DNA from: Aplysia californica
Lineage: Eukaryota
DNA: 64,000 bases
Direction of reading: 5' to 3'
NCBI RefSeq assembly: GCF_000002075.1
Contig: NW_004797290.1
Location: forward strand, 1,142,127 to 1,206,126
Notes under the pieces: generated by a model
Database searches by the model: none
Seen by the model: the letters and a program-made list of their open reading frames with translations, nothing else
What the model was told of the DNA's origin: nothing
Made by a program: the position numbers and the translations under genes
Shown here: one piece after another, positions 5,761 through 45,192 of the stretch
Numbering within the stretch: the stretch's first letter is position 1
How the letters are laid out: each line of letters begins with the position of its first letter

Positions 5761-7837
5761 TGCATTACAGGATGTGAAAGCTTTTCTGCCCAAGCAAGAC
5801 ACAAAATTAACGCCTTTTTTTTATTCAACCATTGTCGTATGTTGTGACGTACAAGATAACTCCTATAGGCCAGAAAGACTCGCTGTGTGTCGCTTTGGAT
5901 TACCTCCTCCCACCAAAACAACAGTACATGTATGTCGTTTTCACGTGACCAAATTAAACACACATTTCATGACCATCATCTATCAAAATGCTTCCATCTT
6001 AACCATCTTGTATAAGTATACTTACGACCTTAGAGCATGCATCAAAATAACNNNNNNNNNNNNNNNNNNNNNNNNNNNNNNNNNNNNNNNNNNNNNNNNN
6101 NNNNNNNNNNNNNNNNNNNNNNNNNNNNNNNNNNNNNNNNNNNNNNNNNNNNNNNNNNNNNNNNNNNNNNNNNNNNNNNNNNNNNNNNNNNNNNNNNNNN
6201 NNNNNNNNNNNNNNNNNNNNNNNNNNNNNNNNNNNNNNNNNNNNNNNNNNNNNNNNNNNNNNNNNNNNNNNNNNNNNNNNNNNNNNNNNNNNNNNNNNNN
6301 NNNNNNNNNNNNNNNNNNNNNNNNNNNNNNNNNNNNNNNNNNNNNNNNNNNNNNNNNNNNNNNNNNNNNNNNNNNNNNNNNNNNNNNNNNNNNNNNNNNN
6401 NNNNNNNNNNNNNNNNNNNNNNNNNNNNNNNNNNNNNNNNNNNNNNNNNNNNNNNNNNNNNNNNNNNNNNNNNNNNNNNNNNNNNNNNNNNNNNNNNNNN
6501 NNNNNNNNNNNNNNNNNNNNNNNNNNNNNNNNNNNNNNNNNNNNGTGTGTGTGTGTGTACATGTATTATAAATACATTTCACTATTTCACTTAACACATT
6601 CCTTTTAGTTTTGCAAATTATTAAAACCACTTGTGGGATAGAGAAGAACAGAAGAAAAAACCCCACAGGTATTGTTGATCGTATGGGCCGTCTTCAAAGT
6701 TTACTCTAACGTCTGGATCCAATCATAAGTCAGAGGTAAGGCCTACATGTAACATGGTTGAATGGCACCACTGGAGGGTAGGCCCTTACTTATTTTCTTC
6801 CCCTCTGTTTTTTCTGTCTATCTGATTTACCACTTCCCTGCACTACTTGACCGTTATTGTGTCGATGTGCTTCTCTTTCCTCAAACTCAAAACTCAAACA
6901 TGTCTCCACATTTATTACAGGCAGTCCAACCCCGGCATCACTGCTTTCATGAAGAAAATGGGCTTTGGTGATGATTACACGAAACTGGAGCAGTACTACA
7001 TGCAGAAGTAAGTCACTGGGCGTACGTTCGTACACAACCGTACAGTTATAATGATAGGCCTGATTGGTAGCAGAATATAGACCCGATCATAATCATCATT
7101 CTCATAACAAGAATAATAATATATGGCATTTACGTAGCCTCAACCCCAATTAAAAAGGGCTGGTTCCGAGCGCTTTGCATGTCTACAAAAGCAGCAGCAA
7201 AAGTACAGTAGACCTACAATGTGTCCCGTCCAAAGAGGTTATTTGTTATCATGTCTTAAATTTATATCATTTCTCCTAAAAACAGAAATGGCATTAGTCG
7301 ACTGTTCATGAATTGAAAATATCTGCAGTGTGTTCCATAAAATGCAAATGCTCTTTCATCGATTTTTTAAAGTTTCATTGACATCAATAGAATAGGCTAA
7401 TTTGTTTTTGTCAGTTAGTGACCTTGAACTGTGAGCTGGAAAAAACCCAGTTTCAACTGATTTGATAAATATACGATTGTGCCCTATCATTCAAGTTCAA
7501 GCATTTGTGATATAGAGTGGCGTACTTGTACTGTACATTATTATGTTCTCAACTGTTGGAAATCAGCCTTTAGATACAAGTAATCTTACCAACCCACAAG
7601 ATCCTTAAAATAAGTAAAAGAAACCAAAAAAAAAAAGAAGGACACGATTTTTTTTCTCTCAGGATTTAGCTTAGTACCAAACCTTGCAACATCATGATCA
7701 GTATTATTATTACTTCAATATCCACATGGATTTAAAGGACGAGAATCGCTTCCACGTCTCTATTCCGGTGTTTGCTTTAGACGTTCTTTTATTGTCTTTT
7801 TTTAAAACGTGATTTCAATGTTTCAATTGGCTTTCAG

Positions 7838-7907
7838 GGTGCTTGACATTGTGTCTGGTCTGAAAAAGGGATACATGGTTTGGCAAGAGGTCGTCGACCT
7901 TGCAAAG
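7838..7907 (+). CDS. HEXB: Hex-1 exon (human exon 10 equivalent)
   Basis: tttcag|G...AAG|gtacac; [23 protein letters not shown], 70 nt. Confidence 0.9.
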
Positions 7908-8879
7908 GTACACTGCTTTCTTGTCTTCGTACAATATGTAACAAGTTAGCTAATCGTTTTGTGCGGCTGCATTCTGCCATTCTTATTATGATTTACATGA
8001 AGCCGTTATTGTATTTTTGTCCAAGTCCTACCTTAAACCTTGCCTGTTAACAGTACGCTGATGAGCCACACTAAGTACAACCACATGTACATTAGAAATG
8101 TCTCATGAGTTTAAAGTCTGAACCTGTCACCGTAATTAGCCTGATGGTAGTTGTAAAGTTCAAAGAGCATGCTGTAAAGCAAGAGTACGCCCATTTTTAA
8201 TTAAATGATCTTTATTAATCAATCGATTAACGTGTCTTTGGTCAGGACTTGGACATGTGGAGGGTTGTTTGAGAGCACAGATTTACACCGTAAAATACAC
8301 CGTATTTGACAGTCAAGTTTGAATGCTCAATACGGAACACTGTATGCATTCCTACCTTAGTTTTTTGCTTGGTTCTAACTACAGTCGAAACTGTCTAAGA
8401 CGGCCGCCCATTGTCGGGTAGAAAAGTGACCTTCGTCTTAGATCGACGTCTTACACAATGTCATTATAAAGTACAAAAATACGCCGTGGAAGAAATGGGA
8501 AGTGGTAGTTAGTACAAGTGATTGTTTTACATGTATACAGATGGCCTTAAGAGCAGGTTCACTGTTGTAATAATAATTTCCTTATGTTGGCAGGTAGCTG
8601 AAGACACTATTGTGAATGTTTGGAGAGACAAGTGGCAGGACGAGATGGCCAGGGTGACAGGTATGGGCTACAAGACACTCCTCTCCAACTGTTGGTACCT
8701 CAACTACATCAGCTATGGTCCCGACTGGAGTACTTACTACAAGTGTGACCCACAAGACTTCCCAGGTGCGTCCCATTGTACTCATGCGTTTGTGTGAGTG
8801 TGTGTTGTGTGTGTGTGAGTGTTTGTGAGAGTGTGTACATGTATATATATTTATGTGTGTGCGTGCGTGATGCGCGCCC

Positions 8880-8953
<74 letters not shown>

Positions 8954-11900
8954 ATAAGAAAGAGGAGGACGAAAGTGACGCCGAGGAAAGGAGGAGGAGG
9001 AGGAATTATTCTGTTACTCTCCGGGAACCTTAATTATGATAAGGAGGAGGGTGTTTAGAGGTAATAACAAAGAGAGCTCCTTTCTCAGGAGGTTTCTGCT
9101 CTCATTTCTATATTCTGGCAAGTTTGGGCCTACTGAAGATGGATTTTGCTTTAGAGTGATTACTTTCTGCATTTGTATTCTCGCGTATTCTGCTGTTACA
9201 TCACACGTAACATGCATTCTGATGTTTTATTTCAGGCACTGCTCAACAGAAAAGTCTTGTTCTTGGAGGGACAACAACAATGTGGGGGGAATATGTTGAC
9301 GACACAAATCTCATCTCCAGATTTTGGTGAGTTGTACTTGTAGCCTACTTACTTGTAGATTCTACTTGTACAATGTATCACTATCTGGATATCAGTAATT
9401 CTATTGAAGTTTTGTTTTCTCGTTGTAAAGTAGAAAGTGAAATGAAAATAGTAGGCTTGTTTTCTATAAGGTGAAAACTTTTATTTCAGTACATGTACAT
9501 ATAAGGCAGTAAAAATTCATAAATTATGCATTATCATCGATTTATTATCTCACTCCGGAAGAGCTTGGGCGTCTGATATTACTGATAACAAAGCCCTCGG
9601 TTTTTGTTGGGTTTTTTTTGTTGTTTTGTTTAAGCTAGAATCTAGGTCTGAGCGAATCTTGTAATAGAAAGATAACATAAAATCAATCTAGTTAATCAAC
9701 ATAGACTCAGATTGTGTAGTTGGTGAGTGTAATTAGTATGAAGCACTATATAATGGTAGGCCCTACTCATTTAATCCTCGGTTTCATTCGCCTCTATCAG
9801 TATCACTGACCATCCTGGTATTGGTCATGGGCTGACTAGCGTAGCACTCGCGCGGGCTGTTTGAATTTGATTGAATAGCTTACTGATCAAGTTAACATCT
9901 GACTTTTTGATGTACTGGGGTTCTCATTAGTGCCTTTATCCTGTGAGCTGAAGGACGAATAATACTATAGATACCGGGTAGATCTAGTAATATTATACAT
10001 GTACCCATCACACCTCTCTTATTCTTATCGCTGAATTACTCTCTCTCATTTTCATGTCTGTTCTGAAGTGTTCTGGGCGAACTTCTCCAACTCCAGGAGT
10101 TATGCCCCATATTAAGCCAGGGATTTGCCTCCAGATCTGGGCCTTCCTCTCTTTCTCCTCACCTGTTGGGGGGAGGGGAGGGGGGGTCCTTCATAGTCAT
10201 CTTAGCTTTGCTCCTGTTTGCGTCGAGAAAAATTACGAACTTGGTCAGTAATGTAACAAACAAATACATTGCTGTGAATCAGTGTGTTCTCCACGGCTAT
10301 TTAGACATTTAGTTTTTACAGATACTTAATTGAACACTGCTGTCAATCAGTTGAATCAGTGTGTGTACACCATACATTTAGATCTAGTACATGTATTTAG
10401 ATCTAGACTTCAATGTAACATTGTTGTAAACCCAAGAGGTATTACATGTATTAGTACATGTACAGGTATATAGAAAAGTCTAGATATAGGCGTACCCACC
10501 AATGTCCCACTATTTCGTTTCTGTCGTCAGGCCACGAGCAGCGGCTGTAGGTGAGCGTCTGTGGAGTGACGCCTCTGTCACTGATGTCGGCGAGGCCCAA
10601 CTGCGTATCGCTGAACACCGATGTCGCATGGTCAAGTAAGTCTTAATACTTAATGTCACTGGACGAAGTATTTTTTTTCTTCTTTTTGGTAAGTGCTTTA
10701 TGCATTTGCAATTGCATAACTTAATAAGGTCATGTGAGAGCGCGGGACACATTTAACATAGATCTAACATTTTCAGTTAGTAGGAAATTTTGAATTTTGG
10801 CTGGGTGGCGGTCGAAGCCTACTCTTATCGATTTTAGACCACCAATTGATGTTTAAGTAGCCTACGTGCGCAACTTGCACGCGGGACCCCCGAGATTGTT
10901 TGCCCTTGTCCGAGAAGTAGAAGGCTTGGTGTAGATCTTTCCTACCACTACTACCAGAAAATCAGGGGTGTGGCTGAAAGACAGCAGTTAGGAGGAGCCA
11001 AGGAGTAGCAGTAGCAGTAGAAAGGCTGCAGAAAGAGTCAGAAACCCAGAGGAGGGGGCAAAGAAGATGAGGGGATGGGGGCACAAAGTGGAGACGAAAG
11101 CAGATAACAGAACGTTGCTAGAGAGAAAGAAAGGGGGTAAAAGGAGACATTGTTTCTATCGCTACCTGGATTCAAACCCGGGACCTTTGAATTAGAGGCA
11201 ACCACCTTAACCTCTAGGCCACGTGGATGTGCAATGGGACATGCATACGGTACCGTAATTGTGTGGCATGATAGGCGCCTATATATAATATGTAGTGGCA
11301 TCGTGGTGAAATCAGACGCCTGTCAAAATAATGAAATCAAAATAAAAAAGACCGGCATTTTTCCGCTTGTTGGGCGCATTTTTTAATGCTTTTTTTTCCT
11401 CAATACCTTTTAAGGCCATCTAAAAATACATGTCTATCTGGATTTTACTGAAAACCGCTGATCAAAGGTACACCCCAAAAAAGTGCAAATTTGCAGTTTC
11501 CAAGGATACTCACACTTTGGAAGTCATCAAACTTGGTGGCCATTTTCTCACTAATTTTACCTCTGACACTAAGCGACCTTTCTTCAAGCACAAATATCTC
11601 GACATCTCTTCAAGATAGATGGGTATTCTATTCTTGAAAAGCAAGATAAATCGTAATAAATGATTACGCCTTACTCAATATGATACCAATACATGTAGAT
11701 ATATCTCCATATGTCCAAATGACGAGCGTCTACTGAATCCACCAAATTATGGTGTTCTTTTCTTCTAAAATCTATTCTAAGTCAATAGACCTAAATAAAT
11801 GAAATCTCATCTTTGAAAGGCGTAACCCGGTACTGATTTAACAATGTCCTTTTCAGAAGATCGAAGATCAGCATGGTAGGCCTACACATTGAGAGCATAA

Positions 11901-12510
11901 CTCTATACTATACATGATGTATTGTCAGTCAGTAGAGAAATGCATGGCTGACATCTCACACTCACAGTAGTGCACTTACTGAATAAAATATGTAAAACAT
12001 GTTTAATCTTTGAATTTCATATTTATAGTTCAATCCATAACTGAATGAATGTTTTATTGTTTTCGGCTATTGCTTGCTTCTTATTGTTTTGTATTTTTCT
12101 CCTTCTACTGAAATATCACTACATGTACAATGGATCACTAGTATCAGGTAGCAAAGCAGTTTTCTCAACACGAGCTGTTGACAGCTCTGGTGAGTGTAGT
12201 GTAGTGTAGCACCCCAACAAGGGCTTGTTTTACTCCAACACAACTGATGGTGATTATATATATATATCTTCTTGTTTTCAAAATTGGCAGTAACATTGGA
12301 GAAGTGCTCTTCTTGATTCATGTCCATTTTCCCTTATAATTTACCTTCTCTTACAACTCCACTGTGATCAGTCACTAATGTCTAGATCTATCAAACTTTA
12401 ATACATCGACATGTACATCGTAATTTGTAATTCTTTCCAACCCACATTGCAGACGTGGCTTCAACGCTGAAGAGCTCATAGGACCTGGCTACTGTGATGT
12501 GGAGTACTGA
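7838..12510 (+). CDS. HEXB: Beta-hexosaminidase (GH20, HEXA/HEXB-like) paralog Hex-1, 3' five coding exons only
   Basis: Exons 7838-7907, 8594-8765, 9236-9326, 10531-10635 and 12453-12510 are all GT-AG and phase-compatible. They encode [37 protein letters not shown] and GPGYC motifs. No upstream exons found in the window. Confidence 0.93.
8382..8564. mobile_element. Tc1/mariner (pogo-like) MITE, TA-CAGTC family
   Basis: TA CAGTCGAAACTG...CAGGTTCACTG; same family as 29745, 31124, 52670. Confidence 0.65.
8594..8765 (+). CDS. HEXB: Hex-1 exon (human exon 11 equivalent)
   Basis: ggcag|...CCAG|gtgcgt; [10 protein letters not shown]...[15 protein letters not shown]...KCDPQDFP, 172 nt. Confidence 0.95.
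8788..8950. repeat. (GT)n microsatellite
   Basis: Direct reading. Confidence 0.95.
9236..9326 (+). CDS. HEXB: Hex-1 exon (human exon 12 equivalent)
   Basis: tttcag|...TG|gtgagt; [31 protein letters not shown], 91 nt. Confidence 0.95.
10531..10635 (+). CDS. HEXB: Hex-1 exon (human exon 13 equivalent)
   Basis: gtcag|...AA|gtaagt; [34 protein letters not shown], 105 nt. Confidence 0.95.
10670..11225 (-). mobile_element. tRNA-derived SINE with Deu/Nin-like central domain
   Basis: Reverse-complement copy of 50087-50615, with A box TGGCCTAGAGG and B box GGTTTGAATCC. Confidence 0.85.
11288..11745. mobile_element. MITE family with ATATGTG.../GGTGGAATCAGGCGCTCGTCAA TIRs
   Basis: Degenerate TIRs; homologous to 34611, 37471, 59963. 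Confidence 0.6.
12453..12510 (+). CDS. HEXB: Hex-1 terminal coding exon
   Basis: ttgcag|A CGT...; [18 protein letters not shown]; AATAAA motifs follow near 12578 and 12698. Confidence 0.92.
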
Positions 12511-33500: not shown

Positions 33501-36500
33501 TCAATGCTACATGATCCCAGTCGCCTACATGTGTACAAATTTCATGTGCTGCCTACTTTAATAAGCTTAGTTGGACTTTCCAAAGGTTCATGGTCACATT
33601 GAACACAGAGACTATTTGGAGAAACAAAATCATGTAAACAGTAGGCTACACCCTTTGCTATTTCACTTTAACTCATATGCCTCAACATCTGTTTACCTCT
33701 GACAAATTTGTGTTACCTGTCCACTGTCATATTGACCAGAAGGCACTGTCTACCTCTCTCAATGCTAGTTTTTGTGCCATGGGGTCTGGTACCTTTAAAA
33801 GTAATAAAAATAAAGATAACTTCTAGAGTGCCCACTCCCTGGTGGTTCTAGGCGTTTTACAATAAGACAAGACTTAAATCAATGTTTCATGCATATTGGC
33901 CCATTTAAAGCACAACAAGTCTTTCAACTACGCATATACACTCGCAATCGGACAAAGAATAACTTACACGAAAAGACAATCACTGTTACTACGAATCACA
34001 CCTGCTGGTGGAAGAAGAATCAAACTAATAAGTAAGATGGGATTTAAGTATACCTATCGCCAATGCTATGTGTATAATTCCAGGCCACACACAGTCATGG
34101 GGAAAAGGCAATCCAAACTTCCTGACAGAGTGTTACTCAAAGGGTCAGCCCACCGGTACTTTTGGCCCTGTGAATCCTATTCAGGATGGTACTTATGACT
34201 TTTTGGCCAAGTTCTTCAAGGAAGTCAGTGAAACATTTCCTGATCACTATATCCACTTGGGTGGAGATGAAGTCAGTTTCAACTGCTGGTAAGTTATCCA
34301 GCGAAGTTGTTTCTATTTTTTTGTTTTTATCTGTAGCTATTCACCTTTACTACTATGTAACATTTACCTTTCTTTAAAAAAAAGTGTCCAAAGTTTTGTT
34401 TACATACTGCCTATAATCTATACATGTGTCATCCTTGTAAAATATATAAATGTATATAAGTCAAATTTTAAAAAATTTCATATATTACAATTTCAGCAAG
34501 TTAATTTTGCTCTCTCAACTATGTTTGTCTCTCATTCTGTGATGCTTTGAAAACATTCTTCTCTCGACCTGCATGTAACATATGGCGTAACTTTCCTTTG
34601 TGATTTTTTAGGCATCGTGGTGAAATCAGGCGTCCGTTAAAATAATAGGATCCAAGAATAGGGAATTAATTCACCAGTTGTTGTTTTTTTGGGTCAACAC
34701 CTTTTATGTTAACACAAAGACACATTTCGATGTGAATTTTATTGAAAAACATTGATTAAAGGCAGCACAAAATATATGTAATTTTCAGTTTTTTATTCAC
34801 TATCTCAAAATTACAAAGTTCTATCTGCTCTGTGCCTAGTTTTGAGAAATTTGATGTCAACAACTTTGAGTTTCCCATCATGTCAAGCTTTTTTTAATGC
34901 AATTCTTTAAATATCTTGATAACAACTTCAAATAATCTGAGCAGATAAAACATTTGGTTTTTGATCTCATGGTCTTAATAACTTAAAACAACCGAAAATG
35001 TCAGATAGAACTTTGTAATTCTGAGGTAGTGAATTGAAGTGATCAATTTTCTCATTTATTTTACCTCTGAAACCAGGCAACCCCACTTCCTTCAATTGCA
35101 AATATCTTGACTTCTATTCGAAATAAACAGATTTTGTTTCATTGAAAGAAAGGCAAATGAATAAGCTTTCAGATGATATCAATAACCCCACATGCCCAAA
35201 AATTGACGAGCGCCTGATTCCACCGCATCGTGACTCATTCTGTATTTTTCCAATTATCAGGAGGTCAAATCCAAACATCTCAGACTTCATGGTAAAGATG
35301 AATTTTTCCTCTGACTATTCCAAGCTGGAGGAATTCTACATGCAAAAGTGAGTTTACAGAACTGAGCATGTGTTGTTACTTTTAATTTTTAGGTTTGTGT
35401 TTGGTTTGAGATGAGTTTACTGTTGGCGCTTTGGTTTTTCCCAAGTGGAAGGATTGTAGACTTTCTGGTGGTTCCCAACTTCCACACGCTTCACTCATTG
35501 CAAATTGGAAGGTGGGGTTTACTGCTATGCTGGTGTTTGCTTGGTCTTTTTATGTCTTGTATTGCTATTCTTGTTGATTTCTTTCTTGACTCATAAGAAA
35601 ATACTACTGTGAAAGTTTACCAGATTTTTTTCAAGTAGCCTACAATTTCAGCAGTTGTAAGATGGCATTTATTCTGTTAGTTTTTATGTAGAGAGTACAA
35701 TCATGTCTTAAGAAATATGATTTAGATTGATAAATTTTATAGACATTTGGGATATATAAACCTTGAATTTGAATGAACAGATAAACTCTTTCATATTTTC
35801 TCCTTTTGCATTTTGTGGCAAGCATACAGCATGTTAGTGCTTTCTGATTTTTAGTTTAATTTACTTTCAGAGTACTGGATATTGTTGGAAGTCTCAAAAG
35901 AGGATACCTTGTTTGGCAGGAAGTTGTGGATAATGGAGTGAAGGTGAACACAGTCTCTCTCTGCCTTCTTACTTTTAGAGGAGGATAGTGATTTTATCCT
36001 TAAAATTTAAAGGGTGACCGATGGTGTGAAGGGAAGATCCTTAATGGAACAATTTTTGAAACTTATGAAAGTACACCTGACACTGTTGTTATGACTCTAC
36101 CATCTCAGTGAGGAAGGCCCTGAGTTTCTACTGCTTGGTGACATAGTTGTTCTTTCTCTCCAGTAAAACCATTTCTCCATAAATGTCTTTTATTGTTTGC
36201 TGAAACTGGGGTACCTCTGTGCGGATGACAATCCTTCTTTTATGACTGATTTCAGTCTGCTTAGATTTAAAAAGCTTCAAAATAAGTGAATAAGCATCGT
36301 TGTTTGATGAATAATCTGCACCCACTATATCGACATAGATGTACATGGGAAGAAAAAATGTTTATTTTGTTTTGAAATTTATTTATTTGAGTAGACAGTT
36401 GTCAGCCAGTTTGAGACTTTGCTAACCTTCAGGTGAGCTCGGATGCCATAGTTCATGTATGGAAGAAATACTGGCAGGAAGAGCTGGCCAAAGTGACCAG

Positions 36501-39500
36501 CATGGGCTACTCTGCTGTGTTGTCCTCAAGCTGGTACCTCAGTTACATTGAGTACGGCAGTGACTGGACCAGGAGATACCTAGAAGAGCCTTACAATTTT
36601 ACTGGTTTGTGTGTCCTCCATTTTGTGGTGGTCCTCCGGGCAGGGGGGTCTGGCCTTGTTTTTTGACTAGATTTGCTGCACTATTGACCTTTTCTAGCAC
36701 ATTCCCACGAGACAACTCATGGAGAGGAGAGGAGATTTGTGAGACTGAATTGAAACTAGGTTTTGGTTTTCTTCGGGATTTTTTAAAGAAAAGAGCACTT
36801 TTGTTTTGCCTATAATCAGTTCTGCTGATCATTCCAATATGGAACAAAACAATGGTGAGTCTGAAAAGAATATCTCTCAAGTCTCATGAGTTACTCGCTG
36901 TATCATGTAGATATCTTTGCCGTCATTCAACACTGTAGTATGTCAAAACTGAGAATAAAATGAAAGTATGTTGTAGAGTTTGATTAGGAACATTGATTGG
37001 TCGTGGTTTCATTCCTTTTCTTAAAACAGTGGTTTTAAACGTATTAAACAATTTGTATTAAGCGAATGTCCTGCCTGAAATATAATAGATTTTTGCTTCT
37101 CCTGAAAACCTCGTACTTTTGACATACGACAATGATGAATGACAGAAGTGAGATGATTTGTCTCCCTGGGGCTTCTCCCCCCCCCACTCCCCTCAGTCAG
37201 GTCTGGTCCTCCAGCCAGAATGACATGTGACTTTTGTGTTATCAAAGAAGTGCGCCACTGAAACAATTGCACACATTCTTATAAAAACTCTTCTCTGTCT
37301 TGGGACAACTTTTGCAGATAATCATGGGAAACACCAAATTGTATGAAAACCTTGTTCATATTACTTCACATAATGTTCTGTGCATATAATTTCAGTATGA
37401 ATATTAAGTTGGAAATTCCATCCCCATATTATTTTCCTTTGTAAATTTGTCTTTCTTTCACTAAGAAATTATATGTGTCATGACGTGGTGGAATCAGGCG
37501 CTCGTCAATTTTTGGGCATATGGGGTTATCATTATCATCTTAATGCCTGTTCATTTGCCTTGCTTTTAGTGGAAAAAAAAATCCATTTATGTTGAATAGA
37601 AGTCGTAATATTTGTGATTAAAGGAGGTCAGGGTTGCCTGGTTTCAGAGGCAAAATTAGTGAAAAATGGTCGCCAAAGTTTGGTAATTTCCATAGTTTAA
37701 GAGTCCTTGAAAACTGAAAATTTACATTTTTGTGCCTTTAACCTATGTTTTTCAGTAAAATCCATACGCAAATGTGTTTTTAAATGGATCTCTAACGGCG
37801 TTGATTCAAAAAACAAAATTTGATAAGAATTGCCAAACGAACAGAAAAATGTCAGTTTCTTCGATTTCATTATCTTGACGAGCGCCTGATTTCTCCAAGT
37901 TTCCTCACATTTTATCTTAAATGTTGTGTTTGCAACTCCCAAGCATGGTGTTTTCTTTGATACTGCAAAGAAGAATGTCCAAGATAATTAAAAACTCTTT
38001 CTTTTCTACTTGCCCTTTTCTGATGGCTGTGTAATTTGATGTTACCCATGTATGCGTTGCCCATTTTTCAAGGTGCGGGAGGACACCGTTGTCCATGTGT
38101 GGAAGGGCGGATGGCAGGCGGAGATGGCAAGGGTCACGGGACTCGGCTACCACACTCTTTTGTCTTCCTGTTGGTATCTGAATCTCATTAGCTACGGCAG
38201 TGATTGGGTCAACTACTACAAGTGCGACCCTTACGCTTTCAACGGTAAATGTACACGGCATGCTGTGGCATGTGCTGAGTGTGAGGGGTTACAGTACAGG
38301 CATGGCAGTGGTTCCCACACCCATAGTTTATGCTGTCACTTTTAATAATGAGAGTTAAAAGGAGGATGTCAGGCATGTAATGCTTTCTGTAAATTTGTTG
38401 TGATTCAGTTCATTTTATCTTGACGAGTTTTTTTTCTTCTTTATGTTTTATTTTTTCATACTAAAAGTTGGAAAACATCTTTTCTTGAACTCTGGAGGAT
38501 ATTTTCATGTAAACAGTTTTAACATCGTGAATTTTGTAAGTAAGCATCAGCTCTTGAAAATTGCTTGGTTCAGGTGTTTAAAAGAACAAAAGATGTTTTT
38601 CAGATTAAACCAAGTGAAGAATTGTTCAAATATGACAGTTTTGAGTGTTGGGGAATCTAAAAGTAAAAGTTCAGTCAGTCGTGTCACTGCTAAAAAAAAG
38701 TCTGAAAAGCACTTGTATGGAAGATGGGTAACGTAGCATGTAGTAGGACTGTGCCTTGGTGGATACAAATGGCGAGAACTTGGACGTTTGATGTAGAAGA
38801 ATGAATACTACTTAATAACTCTCTGTAGTTTAGTCAACATTAATGCTACTTCATGCAGAAAGTACCAAATGGGTACATTTATTCAGAGCACTACTATTTG
38901 ATACAACCTTGGACTTGGAGAAGGTGTCAACATCACGTAGCGGCTGATTGGCAGGTGCTCTGGTGTGGATTTCTACTTCTTGCCTATGAAACATCTAATC
39001 CTCCTGATATCTCCTCCTTCTTTTTACATGTTTGTTACCCTCTTGTAGCATCTCTGATCTTCTCTTATATGACCTTATTGTGTTGCAAGTGCCGTTAAAA
39101 TCTTATTAGAACTAAAAAGAATCACTTAAGTTGACCCACCCACCACCACTCGCATCACTGTAGCACGTACTCCGGGATCAGATGATCTTTGTGCAACACA
39201 AAAGTGGTGACCAATGAAAATTTGATTATCATTAGCCCTGGGATAATATAATAATATATATACTTGTGTAAGAATCAGTATATAAGAGAAAATTGTTGAG
39301 GAGAATGTGCAGAGATAATTGAAAATTCATAGGATGAAACGTCTTTTTTTTTTTTTTTTACTTTAATCTAATAACGTAACACATCTCCTAGACTTCCTCC
39401 CTCAAAAAAAAAAAAATTTACAAAATTACAAAAAAAACCCAAACCATTTGATGCTTAGCTGTGATGTCATGTATTAATAGTTCTTCTTACATGAGGACTC

Positions 39501-42500
39501 CCAAGTGATTGAAGTTATTGATTAAGGCACAGCCCTAGCCTATAACCATTTCTTCCTTGTTTAGTTACTCTTCTCTTGTACTGTAGATGATACGCCTACT
39601 TTTAACTGAACTAACAATCTGCTTGCTAAAACAGGTGTAATGATATTTTTTTTACTGATACTAAAAGCATGCTTACTGTCTGTGATCTTGCATAACACAA
39701 AAGTAATCTGACAGGTTTGCTTTATGGCAATTAAGCGGTCGTTATAATATTAAATTTGTCGAGGAAATCTTTCATAGCATGCATGTAGGTTACTAGTGTT
39801 CAAAACTTTTTCAATGTCATAATGTTAATAAGAATTTTACTTTTTCCCATTTCAATACCCATGAATCATCCTTTTCCTGTTCCGTGATCACCATATCTCA
39901 TGGATAAGGCTTGGACAACAATTCCCCCAAATGCACTACCATCTCCTTTTCATTTCATGAGGTGTTATTGTCATTGTTAAATGGACACTCCCGGAACATA
40001 TCTTTTCATACATGTTTAATTATACATTGGTACAACCAAGTGGTAGAAATCGTTAACTTTATTTCTTACTTTAAGTCTTCCAAAGTAAATGAACAAGTAC
40101 ATAGACTTATTTGTTGTGACCAATGAAGATTCTTATTAATGAAAGATTCTTTATTTTCTGAATACAATTTTATTTTTAAAATAAAATTGTCTCTGCCTAA
40201 GGTCCCATCACTTACATTTCTGTCCTGCTGTTTTAAAAAAGCAGAATTTTTACTGCACAACGGTCGTCATCTCTAAGACACCGCTTGGAAGGACTAAATT
40301 CGTCTAAGACCCCACATTTTAGATTTTAATTTTCTGAACGAACACCCATGCCCAAGCTAAACAACCAAACCACATTGTACTACCTGCCTTTGCGTAATGT
40401 TATCATCAGTTGACAGTGAACCTGCCAATCGTTTTTCCAATTTTAACTGGTGCAGTCACAACATTGTGATGCATTATGACATGAGCAAGTGGGGAACTCG
40501 ATCAGAGATGGAAAGCTATAAATTTAGGAAATGTTAAACGGTAGCGCAATGGTATTGTATCAGCCTAGAGCTTGAGACATATTTGTCATAGCCTCACAAC
40601 TGTGTTTTCTCTTGGAGGTGTTAATAGAGACGTTAAGCCCACACACTTACTTACGTTTACTTGCAGGAACGGCAGCACAGAAAGCTCTCATTAAGGGAGG
40701 GGAAGCAGCCATGTGGGGAGAATATGTAGACAACACTAATGTCATCTCAAGGACATGGTAAGTACTACGCTCACATCTGTGGTTGACTAAAGTTCATAAA
40801 TATTTTTGTATGATATTATTCTTATTCAGTGTATGTCTACATGTTCTTTAGAATGTGCCAGGGGATTTTTTTTCTCTTTAAAGTTTTGTTGTTGTTGTTT
40901 TTTAGGGGGGGGGGGATTTATTTATTATTTATTTATTTTATTTTTATTTTTTGGGGTGGGTAAGTTTTCTAAACTTGATATGTTTATATATTTTCAAATT
41001 TCAAGTAATTAAAGTGGTGTCTTCACTCTTATGATGAAAAAAAAGATTTCTTAACTTGGAAAAGGAAATCATTGCTCATAACTTTGTCATTATAAAAGCT
41101 AATTTGTTTCAATTTCATTGCAATACACCCCCTGTTATCCTTTCCAACTGTTAAAATAACCCAAATTTCTACCCGATGAAATGGCAACAAAAAAACCCCA
41201 AATAACCTATCCAAAATACTGGCCTATCAAATAATTTGACACATCTTCTTAAGAGACACAGGCTCTTGTTCACGAAATGAAGTTCTAGACACCATACTGT
41301 TTTCTAAGCCTTCCAGCAAATTGAGGTACAAAGACAACTACAAAAACAGCTTATGTAAGCTTGGAGTAGATGTTAACATCTGAGAAGAAATAGCTGAGGA
41401 CCGGAAAACATGGAAGAAAATTATAAAGGAAAGAACTTAAATGCTAGAGAACTGCCTTAGAAACAACCAGGCTGAGAAGCGCCAACGACGAAAGGAAAAC
41501 AGCGGAAATACAGAGCTTCGATCTACGACACCAGCATGCAAGCACTGCGACAGAATCTGCGCTTCAAACATAGGAAGAATTAGCCATGAAAGAAGCTGCA
41601 TGAAGACAACCTTGAGACCATCTTAAGCTAAATTGACAGTCTGCTTAGACGAAATTAGCCATATACTGTTTTCTAAGCCTTCCAGCAATAACATTTTCTG
41701 GCTTATTGTGATATTTCTCAACAAAGACAAAGATGTCCACAAAACACTGAAGACTTGTTTTAATATGTTTTAACTCAAATAATTTGAGAAGTTTTAAACT
41801 AAATTTACTTGCTTGACATCAAGTTTAGAGTGTTATGTTCAGTCATGGGCATGTGTTTCAATTTCATCACTGATGTTTCGCAAGTTCGTCATAGACATAG
41901 ACTTTGTGTATACTATTATAATCTTATCATAAATTGATTACCCTTTACAGCCAAAATAATGGTAAAAACCGAAGGTTGGGGTAAAAAAAATAACAGTTAA
42001 TAGACTTTCACTTTAGTATGTGCACAAAATTATGAGTTACCTTGAAATTTTATTAGCACGGCGCACCGGCAGTGGAATTTTAGTTGCCACGTCGGGGTCA
42101 CGGGGGTCAGCTCCCTGTCGCCGCTCTGTCTGGGCCGACTTAATTTTTGGTACTTTTCAACGTACAATTTAAGGTGCATCCTTGTATTTATGGTAATTCT
42201 CATTTAGTGCAGCCAAAGCACGCATTTCTGCTCTTGAGACTCAAAAAAGAACGGACGTTGTAACTTGTCTGGTTATTTCGTTAGACGCGCTGGAGTCGGC
42301 AATGCTAAATTGTAATTTTTTTGGGACTAGCGTGAATGAAAAAAAATCAATATAAAAAAACCGCATCGTCAAAATCTGTCGAACTTTTGGAATATGAACG
42401 ACATAACATTAGTGAAGATACTCAGAAAAGATGGTATCTGCGCTTATAATAGAAGGCTGTACTTTTGCAATTTTATCCATCAGGCACACAATTCGCTACA

Positions 42501-45192
42501 AAGTAATTCCTCCAAATACAACTTTATGTGTCTAATATAATCTTGAATATTCGCATATTTTCTCGAAAGTTTATAAAAGTTATCATGAAGTTTCTCAATG
42601 AAAAGTACAAATCGATTTTAGTGCTAGAATATATCTTCAACGTAGATCTAATACACGAACAGTATCTGTTACACTCCAGAAATTGCTTACTTTTCTTAAA
42701 ACGCTAAGTCTAGGTTTTGTAAGTTGACTGAATAATAGGGATGACTTCTCGTAATTGGGTTATAAGAATAATTTCTAGCTTTCCAGGGACACTGAATCAG
42801 CACCAGACTTTTCCAGCCTTTTTTACGTTTCTATGACCATTTGCAATAACTGACAATGTGACTGATTTCTTTACATTCATAATTGTGTCCGCGCATATTT
42901 CCTACACAAAAACTAAGAATTAATGTTTTAGCTGTCATTATTTTTATTCCATACTAGAAGTTTATCTCTACCCATGTATTTACACGGTTTTGTGGTTTTT
43001 TAAATCGCTTATATTATATCTTTTTAGTTGTATGCAGGCTGCCACAGACACAGCATGATTCATGAACAAACGCAGAGTAACTTTCTCTTGTTTAATAGTA
43101 AAATAAGAGCTAACGCTGATCATCTTTAGTTAAAATATGCAGATGTGCATCTTTCTTCTCTTATAACTTGACTATTACTACTACCGCAGATTTAAGATTT
43201 CTCATGGTAAAAGACATGATATTCGTAGTCAGTTTAACACAGAATTTGGAGAGATCTGTCGTGCCTTTTTAAAAATATCAATCATTTATTCATAACTTTG
43301 TAACTAAAATAGGACAAATTGGGTACTCTACAAACACTTGTCTAGAACAAAAACTAAGGCACAGAAACTAACCATTCTAACGCAGAATAAATCTCAAGAC
43401 ATTGAGCTTTTAGTACATTCGCGTAATGGTTTGCTGTGTGGGATGGGGAAGAAGTTATATCGTTTTAAACATAGTCAAAAATGCGAACTTCCCGACCGAC
43501 ACCGGCAAAGTCGCCTCAGGGCTCATTAACCCCGTGACCCCGAGCCGGGGAGCTCCGGCGGGCTGCTGAGTCACGCGAACTAAAAGTAACAGAATCGGGC
43601 GAAAAGTGACGCCGTGTTAGACATTTGAGGCATTTTGAAAGGGGGCTGGCTCTGAAGGAGTTACCTACGCAAGTGTTTGGGGCTGGCAGGCATTGGGTTT
43701 GTACGTTTGAGAATCAAGGTCGTCAGCTCAAACTCGGTTTGTGATGGGCTGAATTAACTTGGCCTTTTTTGTTTAGTAACCTCACCCTGATGTTTTCCGT
43801 AGCGAACATATGGCAAATTTAGACCTACATTTTATTAAGATGAAATTGAAACAACTGACAGTGTGCTATTAATTTATAATGTGATTTCTGAAGTACTTTG
43901 TAATTTGCTGTTAAATCACCTTTTTCTGCTATTCTAATCCATAAAGTACAAGTTAAAATCTTGTATACACACGAAACTTATGATCCTGTATTTTACAGAG
44001 GGAGAATGGGAGAGTATGAAGTGAGGTCACTTACTGGATATGATGAAATTGAAGCATGTAACCCTGCTCAATGGGTTTTTTAAAAATCAGATGATAATGA
44101 AAGCAGGGTCTTGGTTAAGAGCAACAGTCTGGTCCTATAATGGAGTGGGACAGTGGCACAGCTATGCTTTCTGAATTCTGTGTTTAATGCCCCTATCAAC
44201 ACTAGAGGCAGGACCTGAGAACTGACAGGAATGAGCCATACGGGTTGAGAGCCTTGAAAACTCAAGAAAATGAGAAGAAAAGTTCAGACTGGGATTCTAT
44301 CCAGGGTCATCGGCTCCTTAGTCCAGCATGATACTAACTGAGCCTCCCTGAATTTTGTTAGAGGGAGAATATTTCTATTACAGTACAGCAAGGTGAAAAA
44401 CATTTTTTTTTTTTTAAATGTCTTCCAGGCCTAGAGCGAGTGCAGTTGCAGAGCGTCTGTGGAGTCGTCAGACAGTCGTGAGTGTGGAGAAAGCCACTCC
44501 CAGATTGGCCGAGCATCGGTGCAGACTCATCAGGTGAGCTTTGGTGTTATTGGAGGTTGAGTGTCTTAAAACTGTGGGTTGGACCCGGTTTTAAAGGAAT
44601 CATTTAGAGGGTTCCCACTCAATCCGAAAAACAGGAAAAGGCTAAGAATTTTATTTTCAGATTTCCTGGTCGGGAAAACACCATAAAAATAGACGGGAGA
44701 AAGCCGGGAAATCAAAGGGCTGTCATCATTATGAATTGTTAAGGTTTTTAAAGATTTTTACAACATGAAAATACCATCGTAAACCTTCCCCCCCTTGATT
44801 TCAATTTTTTAAAATGTATTTGTCGTTCGTTTGATAGCAATGCAGGGTATAAGTTTTATTTTTGTTACAAGCATTGGACCAAAAATATACGAATTTTGTG
44901 ATTGTGAAAGTGGTGATAGATCATAAATAATTTGGCACTGCGAATGGAGAAATGCACTGAAAATTAACGTATGAATGGTCATAAGCATAGAAAAGAGAAC
45001 AGTTTACCATTGCCTTGATGATTTTGCAGGTTTTTTTTACATGCAGAGCAGACATGTGCTGTTTTGTTATCGTTGTAAACGAATAATTTCTGATTATTAA
45101 GAGATCTTTTGTCTTCTTTCTTCAGGCGTGGCTTCCCTGCTGAGGAAATCAATGGACCCGGATTTTGCGAAGAAGAGTACAATAGGTTTTAA
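24267..45192 (+). CDS. HEXB: Beta-hexosaminidase (GH20, HEXA/HEXB pro-ortholog) Hex-2, complete, 548 aa, 13 exons per mRNA with alternative exon 10a/10b
   Basis: Exons 24267-24556, 28361-28482, 30511-30623, 32186-32296, 32564-32665, 33229-33337, 34084-34288, 35261-35347, 35871-35943, [36433-36604 or 38073-38244], 40667-40757, 44429-44533 and 45126-45192 give a 1647-nt open frame. It encodes a signal peptide, [34 protein letters not shown], catalytic HLGGDE and MWGEYVD. Confidence 0.97.
24650..27070. mobile_element. Putative non-autonomous DNA transposon in Hex-2 intron 1
   Basis: Motif GGCTATTCTCACCCGG(TGTGCGTTCACC) recurs near 24655, 24699, 26249 and 26606, and inverted near 26973-27060; TSD not resolved. 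Confidence 0.5.
28361..28482 (+). CDS. HEXB: Hex-2 exon 2
   Basis: ccacag|...T|gtgagc; ...[22 protein letters not shown]. Confidence 0.88.
29745..29916. mobile_element. Tc1/mariner (pogo-like) MITE
   Basis: TA CAGTCAAA...TGATTG TA with GGCCACC / GGTGGCC. Confidence 0.65.
30511..30623 (+). CDS. HEXB: Hex-2 exon 3 (human exons 3+4 fused)
   Basis: [32 protein letters not shown]..., 113 nt. Confidence 0.95.
31124..31935. mobile_element. Tc1/mariner (pogo-like) MITE
   Basis: TA CAGTCAAACCTGC...GCAGGTTTGACTG TA. Confidence 0.88.
32186..32296 (+). CDS. HEXB: Hex-2 exon 4
   Basis: [37 protein letters not shown], 111 nt. Confidence 0.96.
32564..32665 (+). CDS. HEXB: Hex-2 exon 5
   Basis: [34 protein letters not shown], 102 nt. 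Confidence 0.96.
33229..33337 (+). CDS. HEXB: Hex-2 exon 6
   Basis: [36 protein letters not shown], 109 nt. Confidence 0.96.
34084..34288 (+). CDS. HEXB: Hex-2 exon 7 (catalytic Asp-Glu)
   Basis: GHTQSWGKG...GTFGPVNP...[14 protein letters not shown], 205 nt. Confidence 0.97.
34611..35238. mobile_element. MITE (ATATGTG family)
   Basis: GGTGAAATCAGGCGTCCGTTAA ... TTGACGAGCGCCTGATTCCACC. Confidence 0.7.
35261..35347 (+). CDS. HEXB: Hex-2 exon 8
   Basis: [28 protein letters not shown], 87 nt. Confidence 0.95.
35871..35943 (+). CDS. HEXB: Hex-2 exon 9
   Basis: [24 protein letters not shown], 73 nt. Confidence 0.95.
36433..36604 (+). CDS. HEXB: Hex-2 alternative exon 10a (mutually exclusive)
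   Basis: gctaaccttcag|...ACTG|gtttgt; [57 protein letters not shown], 172 nt, no stops or indels. Confidence 0.88.
37471..37912. mobile_element. MITE (ATATGTG family) between exons 10a and 10b
   Basis: ATATGTG...GGTGGAATCAGGCGCTCGTCAA / TTGACGAGCGCCTGATTTCTCC...CACAT. Confidence 0.8.
38073..38244 (+). CDS. HEXB: Hex-2 alternative exon 10b (mutually exclusive)
   Basis: ccatttttcaag|...AACG|gtaaat; [57 protein letters not shown], 172 nt. Confidence 0.92.
38945..39118 (+). mobile_element. ~170-bp retroposon 3' tail family
   Basis: GGCAGGTGCTCTGGTGTGG...GCAAGTGCCGT(T)AAA...CTAAAA; other copies at ~49010-49185(-), 56345-56525(-), 58090-58262(+), 63420-63605(+), partial 60505-60570(-). Confidence 0.85.
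40667..40757 (+). CDS. HEXB: Hex-2 exon 11
   Basis: [31 protein letters not shown], 91 nt. Confidence 0.96.
41320..41662 (+). mobile_element. 5'-truncated RTE-clade LINE with 26-bp TSD
   Basis: TSD ATACTGTTTTCTAAGCCTTCCAGCAA at 41294-41319 and 41663-41688; encodes LRYKD...AEDRKTWK...[21 protein letters not shown] with stops. Confidence 0.92.
42054..43619. mobile_element. Non-autonomous DNA transposon with imperfect TIRs
   Basis: TAGCACGGCG...TTTTAGTT...CGGGGTCACGGGG versus CCCCGTGACCCCG...AACTAAAA...CGCCGTGTTA; TSD not seen. Confidence 0.65.
44429..44533 (+). CDS. HEXB: Hex-2 exon 12
   Basis: [34 protein letters not shown], 105 nt. Confidence 0.96.
45126..45192 (+). CDS. HEXB: Hex-2 terminal coding exon
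   Basis: [21 protein letters not shown]. Confidence 0.94.

Follow-up and report, generated by a model that had tools for sequence, protein, structure and literature searches.

A tandemly duplicated, putatively mutually exclusive exon pair in a lysosomal beta-hexosaminidase gene of Aplysia californica

A lysosomal GH20 beta-hexosaminidase gene (HEXA/HEXB family) of Aplysia californica probably contains two tandemly duplicated exons that are used in a mutually exclusive way, a reading to which we give a probability of roughly two in three. The pair, exons 10a and 10b, lies within a 64,000-nt stretch of contig NW_004797290.1, hereafter the window. Exon 10b is the dominant spliced form, and exon 10a is predicted to define a minor isoform confined to a particular tissue or stage. 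The positions below are those of the window.

24267-24556, plus strand: exon 1 of the GH20 gene
28361-28482, plus strand: exon 2
30511-30623, plus strand: exon 3
32186-32296, plus strand: exon 4
32564-32665, plus strand: exon 5
33229-33337, plus strand: exon 6
34084-34288, plus strand: exon 7, with the catalytic D-E
35261-35347, plus strand: exon 8
35871-35943, plus strand: exon 9, 73 nt, constitutive, 5' of the pair
36433-36604, plus strand: exon 10a, first copy, fast-evolving, seen in RNA in unspliced contigs only
36605-38072, plus strand: intron between 10a and 10b, 1468 nt, with a high-copy repeat at about 37468-37915
38073-38244, plus strand: exon 10b, second copy, major spliced form, with joints 35943-38073 and 38244-40667
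40667-40757, plus strand: exon 11, 91 nt, constitutive, 3' of the pair
44429-44533, plus strand: exon 12
45126-45192, plus strand: exon 13, closing at the stop codon
8594-8765, plus strand: lone counterpart of exons 10a and 10b in a tandem hexosaminidase paralog upstream, with N/Y at positions 452/453 and the Cys pair present

The script-built 13-exon model encodes 548 amino acids with either exon 10a or exon 10b, and with 10b its product matches RefSeq XP_005090700.1 exactly. The protein belongs to the GH20 family: it contains Glyco_hydro_20 and Glycohydro_20b2 domains (Pfam PF14845 and PF00728 on predicted protein P0212) as well as HEXA/HEXB-type motifs, i.e., the catalytic D-E and the pocket Arg/His/Trp/Tyr/Glu. 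The PDB matches of both exon copies are HEXA/HEXB. The catalytic D-E pair is encoded by the shared exon 7, and the pocket and specificity residues by the duplicated exon. The paralogous hexosaminidase gene lies about 12 kb upstream.

The two copies are adjacent, homologous exons of equal phase (0/1), each 172 nt long, open in frame 0 and bounded by intact AG/GT splice sites. They share 31 of 57 amino acids and 105 of 171 nucleotides (61%), confirming the coordinates and identity given in the initial annotation, and their proposed homology to HEXA/HEXB is borne out by matches of both to residues 418-471 of human HEXB (E 1e-10 and 9e-13). The annotation had also held that only either/or mRNAs yield the full-length enzyme, and the gene model agrees. 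Inclusion of both exons leads to a premature first stop at codon 501 (TAG at 38189-38191, plus strand), a likely target of nonsense-mediated decay (NMD), and skipping of both to a first stop at codon 425; exclusivity is thus frame-dependent. Exon 10a starts AG/GTGAGC, its acceptor is adjoined by a branch-point-like CTAAC motif, and it ends at a weak donor, GTTTGT, which is also the donor of an annotated Seriola second copy. Exon 10b has the acceptor AAG and the donor GTAAAT.

RNA contigs from the two informative runs, X1 and X9, show 9-10b-11 splicing only. The 10b joints reach depths of 106-712, and exon 10a is present in unspliced contigs at the intron-level depth of 8-18. These contigs run continuously from exon 9 through 10a and its flanks, confirming the 10a sequence. 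Among the joints listed for X1 and X9 (a further 43 are weaker, and contigs drop rare forms), there is no spliced junction into 10a. Of the junctions that the initial annotation proposed as a check, 35943-38073 and 38244-40667 are therefore present, and 35943-36433 and 36604-40667 are absent among the joints listed, as is the 10a-10b joint 36604-38073. Runs X15 and X11 also contain 10a sequence. Two raw-read runs, X23 and X24, have zero depth over exons 9-11 and are probably 3'-end libraries. RefSeq holds a single Aplysia protein for the gene, the 10b form. A protein search with the 10a open reading frame, which sees similar-length proteins only, gave no 10a-like candidate, and the matches to 10a in a search of representative proteins did not exceed about 60% identity. 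Splicing of 10a in Aplysia is therefore putative, since the splicing shown by the RNA contigs is 9-10b-11 only and RefSeq lists 10b only.

Comparison of the copies indicates that both are under purifying selection, as had been predicted for 10a. Exon 10a differs at one of 20 conserved columns, compared to 25 of the 37 other columns (p = 3.7e-6), and divergence between the copies (dS about 1.7, dN about 0.41) gives a dN/dS of about 0.24. When neutral decay was simulated to an equal nucleotide distance, the frame and both splice sites were kept in 1.5% of runs and the 31/57 amino acid identity was never retained. Exon 10a has also evolved at roughly ten times the rate of 10b (branch lengths 0.88 and 0.07), and several of its residues are never found at those columns in other copies. 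Both cysteines of a co-varying pair are gone together from 10a, matching the pattern across the family (163 sequences with both, 148 with neither, 2 with a single one).

In the human enzyme, this exon holds the pocket residues W424, Y450, D452, and L453, and the only two pocket positions at which the subunits diverge both fall within it, with N423/R424 in alpha and D452/L453 in beta (PMC3129794); it is established that positions 452/453 decide the acceptance of anionic substrates. Exon 10a keeps the equivalents of W424, Y450, and Y456, has S/Y at 452/453 (36541-36546) and E at 455, and contains an R-R pair in addition to lacking the Cys pair. Exon 10b has N/L at 452/453 (38181-38186) and encodes the Cys pair at 38169-38171 and 38223-38225. 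Neither copy is alpha-like given these residues, and neither has an alpha-type Arg424 or a beta-type Asp452. The suggested analogy with the human S, A, and B isozymes consequently fails at the key residues in Aplysia, and it holds in teleost hexb, where the copies read D-Y and N-R. A basic residue is also found in abalone copies (S-R, N-K). The copies differ at 452/453 in 13 of 14 genes compared to 10 expected, a modest excess (p = 0.06).

Doubling of the same exon extends to many animals other than Aplysia. Annotated pairs of isoforms that are identical except in this exon occur in Bradybaena (land snail), Haliotis (abalones), Crassostrea/Magallana (oysters), Pecten (scallop), Mya and Mercenaria (clams), Lingula, Lytechinus (sea urchin), and teleosts (hexb), with both hexb copies present in the cyprinid Labeo. 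Genomic tandem copies with AG/GT ends lie at loci L006, L007, L009, L014, and L015. In fish, a mutually exclusive HEXB event called by rMATS involves 175/181-nt exons between flanks of 73 and 91 nt, the lengths of Aplysia exons 9 and 11, and is listed as regulated (inclusion difference -0.136, FDR 0.0016; PMC8933327 supplement). The proposal that one gene makes two subunit types by splicing is thereby partly supported by the either/or pair, the selection on 10a, the annotated pairs in other animals, and the read-level event in fish; it is not matched by any 10a junction among the joints listed in Aplysia.

Phylogenetic analysis rejected the idea that main and alternative copies separated once, in a single ancient event (p-AU 3e-6, for one chosen grouping), which points to repeated duplication, and also rejected one origin of the copies with a basic residue (p-AU 0.04). 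A grouping of 10a with the land-snail first copy was neither supported nor rejected (p-AU 0.22), and 10a has no clear ortholog. The sequences therefore point to duplication of this exon having recurred in many animal lineages, the Aplysia pair being one case. Candidate isoform pairs from Arion, Pomacea (X2/X3), Biomphalaria, Physella, Littorina, Batillaria, and Lottia were ruled out as paralogous genes or alleles; the isoforms of Limulus and Tachypleus differ at the N-terminus only, and two Macrobrachium 'isoforms' are separate genes with 58% identity.

If 10a is included in a transcript, the residues at the pocket's aglycone/charge end (S452, Y453, E455, the R-R pair, and no Cys pair) would alter substrate preference, leaving the catalytic core unchanged. 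Exon 10b would prevail by default owing to the weak 10a donor, and transcripts with both copies or neither would be removed by NMD. The start of 10a may additionally permit re-splicing of a 9-10a intermediate, by which 10a is passed over. The 1468-nt intron between the copies is too long for steric exclusion, for which the introns of 44-64 nt at L006 and L007 would be suited; no convincing docking/selector pairing structure was found in Aplysia.

The most serious rival is that 10a is a once-functional alternative exon, recently silent in A. californica, whose conserved residues reflect past selection only. We consider this unlikely, if worth weighing: the missing 10a junctions among the joints listed in both informative runs, the absence of 10a from RefSeq, its weak donor, its long branch, and its unique residues would all fit, and orthologous genes are single-copy in Plakobranchus, Physella, and at one Bradybaena locus, showing that copies do get lost. 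Against it, 10a has suffered no stop, indel, or splice-site loss, its conserved columns are almost untouched, and the CTAAC motif still adjoins its acceptor.

A mainly regulatory role for 10a, with the protein rarely made, appears less probable again. Exon 10a could serve in recursive splicing, the 9-10a joint recreating AAG/GTGAGC for re-splicing to 10b, or as an NMD-triggering poison exon together with 10b. The start of 10a does form a near-consensus donor, stronger than the one at its own end, double inclusion does yield a premature stop, and a GTGAG start recurs in the first copies of Bradybaena and L006 compared to none of seven single-copy exons, though these numbers are small. However, the GT start follows from a conserved Val codon, the 36604-38073 joint is missing among those listed, and the amino acid pattern is kept along the whole exon, a constraint that a regulatory role would not impose. 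The upstream paralog might further suggest that 10a is a haplotype left uncollapsed in the assembly or a stray piece from a different hexosaminidase gene, but such an artefact is largely excluded by the identity of 61% at the nucleotide level, with synonymous sites close to saturation, the continuous RNA contigs, the confinement of the doubling to this exon, and its presence in other species.

The favored reading of a mutually exclusive pair resembles known tandem duplicated exon substitutions (PMC9741552, PMC8373072, PMC4494069) in the either/or use of same-phase homologous exons and in substitutions that fine-tune a protein whose core is conserved; in other gene families, convergent duplications are on record from different phyla. 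The examples in PMC9741552, the text of which does not mention hexosaminidase, are mostly ion channels in which independent events usually hit different exons, whereas in hexosaminidases the same exon recurs, in up to three copies. Human HEXA/HEXB share the family and a homologous exon holding the only pocket residues that set alpha apart from beta, but there two genes are involved, and the Aplysia copies are without the alpha Arg and the beta Asp. The GM2-activator loop is encoded by a shared exon and therefore lies out of reach of a switch by splicing. An engineered modified HexB combines D452N and L453R with the GSEP loop (PMC3129794, PDB 5BRO); its N-R pair occurs naturally in the teleost hexb second copy, of which 5BRO is the best PDB match, but the engineered protein carries the alpha loop too and the Aplysia copies do not make the N-R swap. 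Teleost hexb, with RefSeq isoforms X1/X2 and the event in PMC8933327 (Data S5), shares with Aplysia the exon, the flank lengths, and frame-dependent exclusivity; unlike in Aplysia, both fish forms are well expressed, and the duplication was probably independent. PMC8933327 lists the gene without remark on exon homology or specificity residues. No description of a hexosaminidase splicing event was found in the literature searched, outside which fell most subscription papers and the supplements of PMC4494069. The kind of splicing is already known, and its occurrence in hexosaminidases is apparently undescribed in that literature.

In a broader interpretation, which we regard as evenly balanced, the specificity exon of animal lysosomal hexosaminidases would be a hotspot of repeated duplication (gastropods, bivalves, a brachiopod, echinoderms, and teleosts), with splicing filling the role that in mammals falls to the split between the HEXA and HEXB genes. 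Splicing of teleost hexb would then yield a subunit (N-R) that resembles alpha and accepts anionic substrates, and in Aplysia 10a would give the enzyme of certain tissues a new pocket. This would represent a clear case of one exon duplicated many times, in which the doubling of an exon and that of a whole gene lead by different routes to the same variety, as exemplified by the three tandem single-copy genes of Physella (N-Y, N-L, and N-D). Should splicing of fish hexb yield an N-R subunit, the buffering in fish models of Tay-Sachs and Sandhoff disease may differ from that in mammals; among cyprinids, Labeo has both copies. In an enzyme family of medical importance, such pairs would provide natural single-exon swaps of the residues that govern the use of anionic substrates, open to standard 4-MUG versus 4-MUGS assays.

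Two tandem copies of one exon are present in this GH20 beta-hexosaminidase gene (HEXA/HEXB family) as the initial annotation had claimed, and a tandem paralog lies upstream:

36433-36604, + strand: exon 10a, 172 nt, AG and GT ends, frame 0 open
38073-38244, + strand: exon 10b, 172 nt, AG and GT ends, frame 0 open
about 6920-12510: upstream tandem paralogous hexosaminidase, 3' half, carrying one exon copy at 8594-8765

When searched separately, 10a and 10b each matched human HEXB 418-471; their identity to each other is 31/57 at the residue level and 105/171 at the base level. A 13-exon model scripted from the window, with no N stretches inside its exons, upheld the proposed either-or frame logic: 10a or 10b alone gives a 548-aa product, inclusion of both leads to a stop at codon 501 (TAG 38189-38191), and skipping of both to a stop at codon 425. 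NMD is expected when a premature stop precedes later junctions by far; since both stops lie well 5' of the remaining junctions, it is expected for both- and neither-copy transcripts. The 10b-form protein is identical to Aplysia californica RefSeq XP_005090700.1 (database protein P0212).

Purifying selection on 10a, which the initial annotation had offered as a check, is borne out by its divergence from 10b (dN ~0.41, dS ~1.7) and by where it has changed: against 85 other exon copies, 10a differs at 1/20 highly conserved columns and at 25/37 others (p = 3.7e-6). In simulations of neutral decay to the 10a-10b distance, the frame and both splice sites were kept in 1.5% of runs and the 31 identities in none; halving the distance let 9% of runs pass the frame, splice-site and identity tests together. 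At the sequence level 10a is thus alive, though fast-evolving (tree branch of 0.88 vs 0.07 for 10b). We conclude that 10a and 10b are a real tandem duplicated exon pair, under selection and belonging to a known kind.

The exon encodes four pocket residues (W424, Y450, 452 and 453). Of 13 pocket residues listed for the human beta subunit, alpha departs from beta at just two, having N423 and R424 in place of D452 and L453 (PMC3129794); alpha-Arg424 permits 6-sulfated substrates and beta-Asp452 hinders them (PMC8162980). The catalytic D-E pair is located in shared exon 7; the duplicated exon is therefore a specificity exon, not the catalytic one. At 452/453, 10a carries S-Y (E at 455) and 10b N-L (S at 455), neither alpha-like nor beta-like, so the proposed analogy with the vertebrate S/A/B isozymes is loose in Aplysia. 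10a has also lost both of two cysteines that 10b retains (38169-38171 and 38223-38225). Among 313 distinct copies, uncorrected for kinship, the two cysteines are almost always present or absent together (163 with both, 148 with neither, 2 with one alone) and probably form a disulfide missing from the human enzymes.

Splicing of 10a was assessed from RNA runs X1 and X9; two raw-read runs had zero coverage of exons 9-11. Two of the predicted junctions, 35943-38073 and 38244-40667 (9-10b-11), were seen at depths of 106-712, and no spliced joint into 10a was among those listed for the X1 and X9 contigs, which lose rare forms; the listing covers the stronger joints, 43 weaker ones lying outside it. 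There, 10a occurred solely within unspliced contigs at a depth of 8-18, resembling intron background. RefSeq holds one Aplysia protein for the gene, and protein database searches with 10a found no 10a-like protein. In the samples seen, therefore, 10b predominates, with 10a minor or restricted at most. Run X16, with only ~1 million letters of contigs, contained every sampled word of 10a; should X16 be an RNA run, expression of 10a there may be substantial.

The best matches to 10a were gene models carrying two copies of the duplicated exon. Annotated isoforms in molluscs, Lingula, Lytechinus and teleost hexb show no differences beyond this exon.

Annotated isoforms, with residues at human HEXB positions 452/453
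Bradybaena: isoform pair, D-G/N-Y
Haliotis: isoforms, N-Y/S-R/N-K
Three oysters: isoform pair, S-D/N-Y
Pecten: isoform pair, N-L/N-Y
Mya: isoforms, D-Y/N-I/N-Y
Mercenaria: isoform pair differing in the duplicated exon alone
Lingula: isoforms, three exon copies
Lytechinus: isoform pair differing in the duplicated exon alone
Teleost hexb (Cyprinodon, Astyanax, Seriola): isoform pair, D-Y/N-R
Haliotis asinina, locus L014:7602-11100: three copies N-Y, S-R and N-K, one annotated isoform each
Teleost hexb, locus L015:5239-5413 and 6097-6277: exon pair of 175/181 nt, D-Y vs N-R

Tandem copies with proper ends were confirmed in genomic DNA of Bradybaena, Haliotis asinina, Seriola and two metagenome contigs. 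In Haliotis asinina, 2/3 copies (S-R, N-K) are basic where alpha has Arg424. Proteins P0095 and P0117 represent a second hexosaminidase gene, apparently of fish origin judging by its sequence, with two tandem copies, the first very divergent. Single-copy genes comprise the Aplysia upstream paralog, Plakobranchus, Biomphalaria, three tandem Physella genes and one Bradybaena gene. The paralog's exon clusters with those of Physella and Biomphalaria in the tree. The Physella genes share one scaffold (L011, L013) and carry N-Y, N-L and N-D; gene duplication there yields the variety that splicing yields elsewhere.

The teleost D-Y/N-R pair is kept from eels to percomorphs (P0341/P0366, P0353/P0355, P0325/P0363). 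The N-R combination engineered into human HexB (D452N/L453R) occurs naturally in the second copy, whose best PDB match is 5BRO. A reef-fish HEXB event called as mutually exclusive by rMATS has 175- and 181-nt exons flanked by exons of 73 and 91 nt, inclusion differing by -0.136 (FDR 0.0016) (PMC8933327 supplement; the main text names HEXB just within a list). Its exon sizes equal those of the Seriola pair and its flanks those of Aplysia exons 9 and 11.

The origin of the copies was addressed with a tree of 87 exon copies over 57 columns only; many of its forks stay open. In the resolved parts, clustering is mostly by lineage (abalone, sea urchin, scallop); the two fish types, each conserved across teleosts, are placed together with moderate support. 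Repeated duplication of the exon is the simplest reading, one early duplication followed by gene conversion being a possible alternative. Topology tests rejected all alternative copies as one group (p-AU 3e-6) and, weakly, a common origin for the Arg/Lys copies (p-AU 0.04); 10a could be joined to 10b, or to the land-snail first copy, without rejection. At 452/453, 23/24 within-gene pairs differ against ~18 expected (p = 0.007, the pairs not being independent), or 13/14 against 10 when counted by gene (p = 0.06), a modest signal.

A weak 10a donor combined with NMD of wrong products would be the likely route to exclusion in Aplysia, where the 1468-nt intron between the copies contains no convincing docking pairing. 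The 10a donor hexamer also ends the annotated second Seriola copy and is therefore usable. 10a starts AG|GTGAGC, such that joining exon 9 to 10a would recreate a strong donor; similar starts occur in the first copies of Bradybaena and locus L006 and in 0/7 single-copy exons. A role for this donor in splicing is a lead only. Introns between copies are as short as 44 nt in L007:8046-8433 and 64/59 nt in L006:142-783, which suggests steric exclusion at these loci. High-copy repeats lie in the Aplysia introns at 37468-37915 and 39064-39110; the former, MITE-like with 41-nt inverted arms, draws many RNA reads from other genomic places.

No description of hexosaminidase exon-pair splicing was found in searchable papers; such pairs are already present in RefSeq isoforms and one supplementary table. 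By itself the Aplysia case carries moderate weight, as no splicing of 10a was observed. The repeated doubling of the specificity exon, together with a D-Y/N-R switch that occurs naturally in fish hexb, merits direct test.
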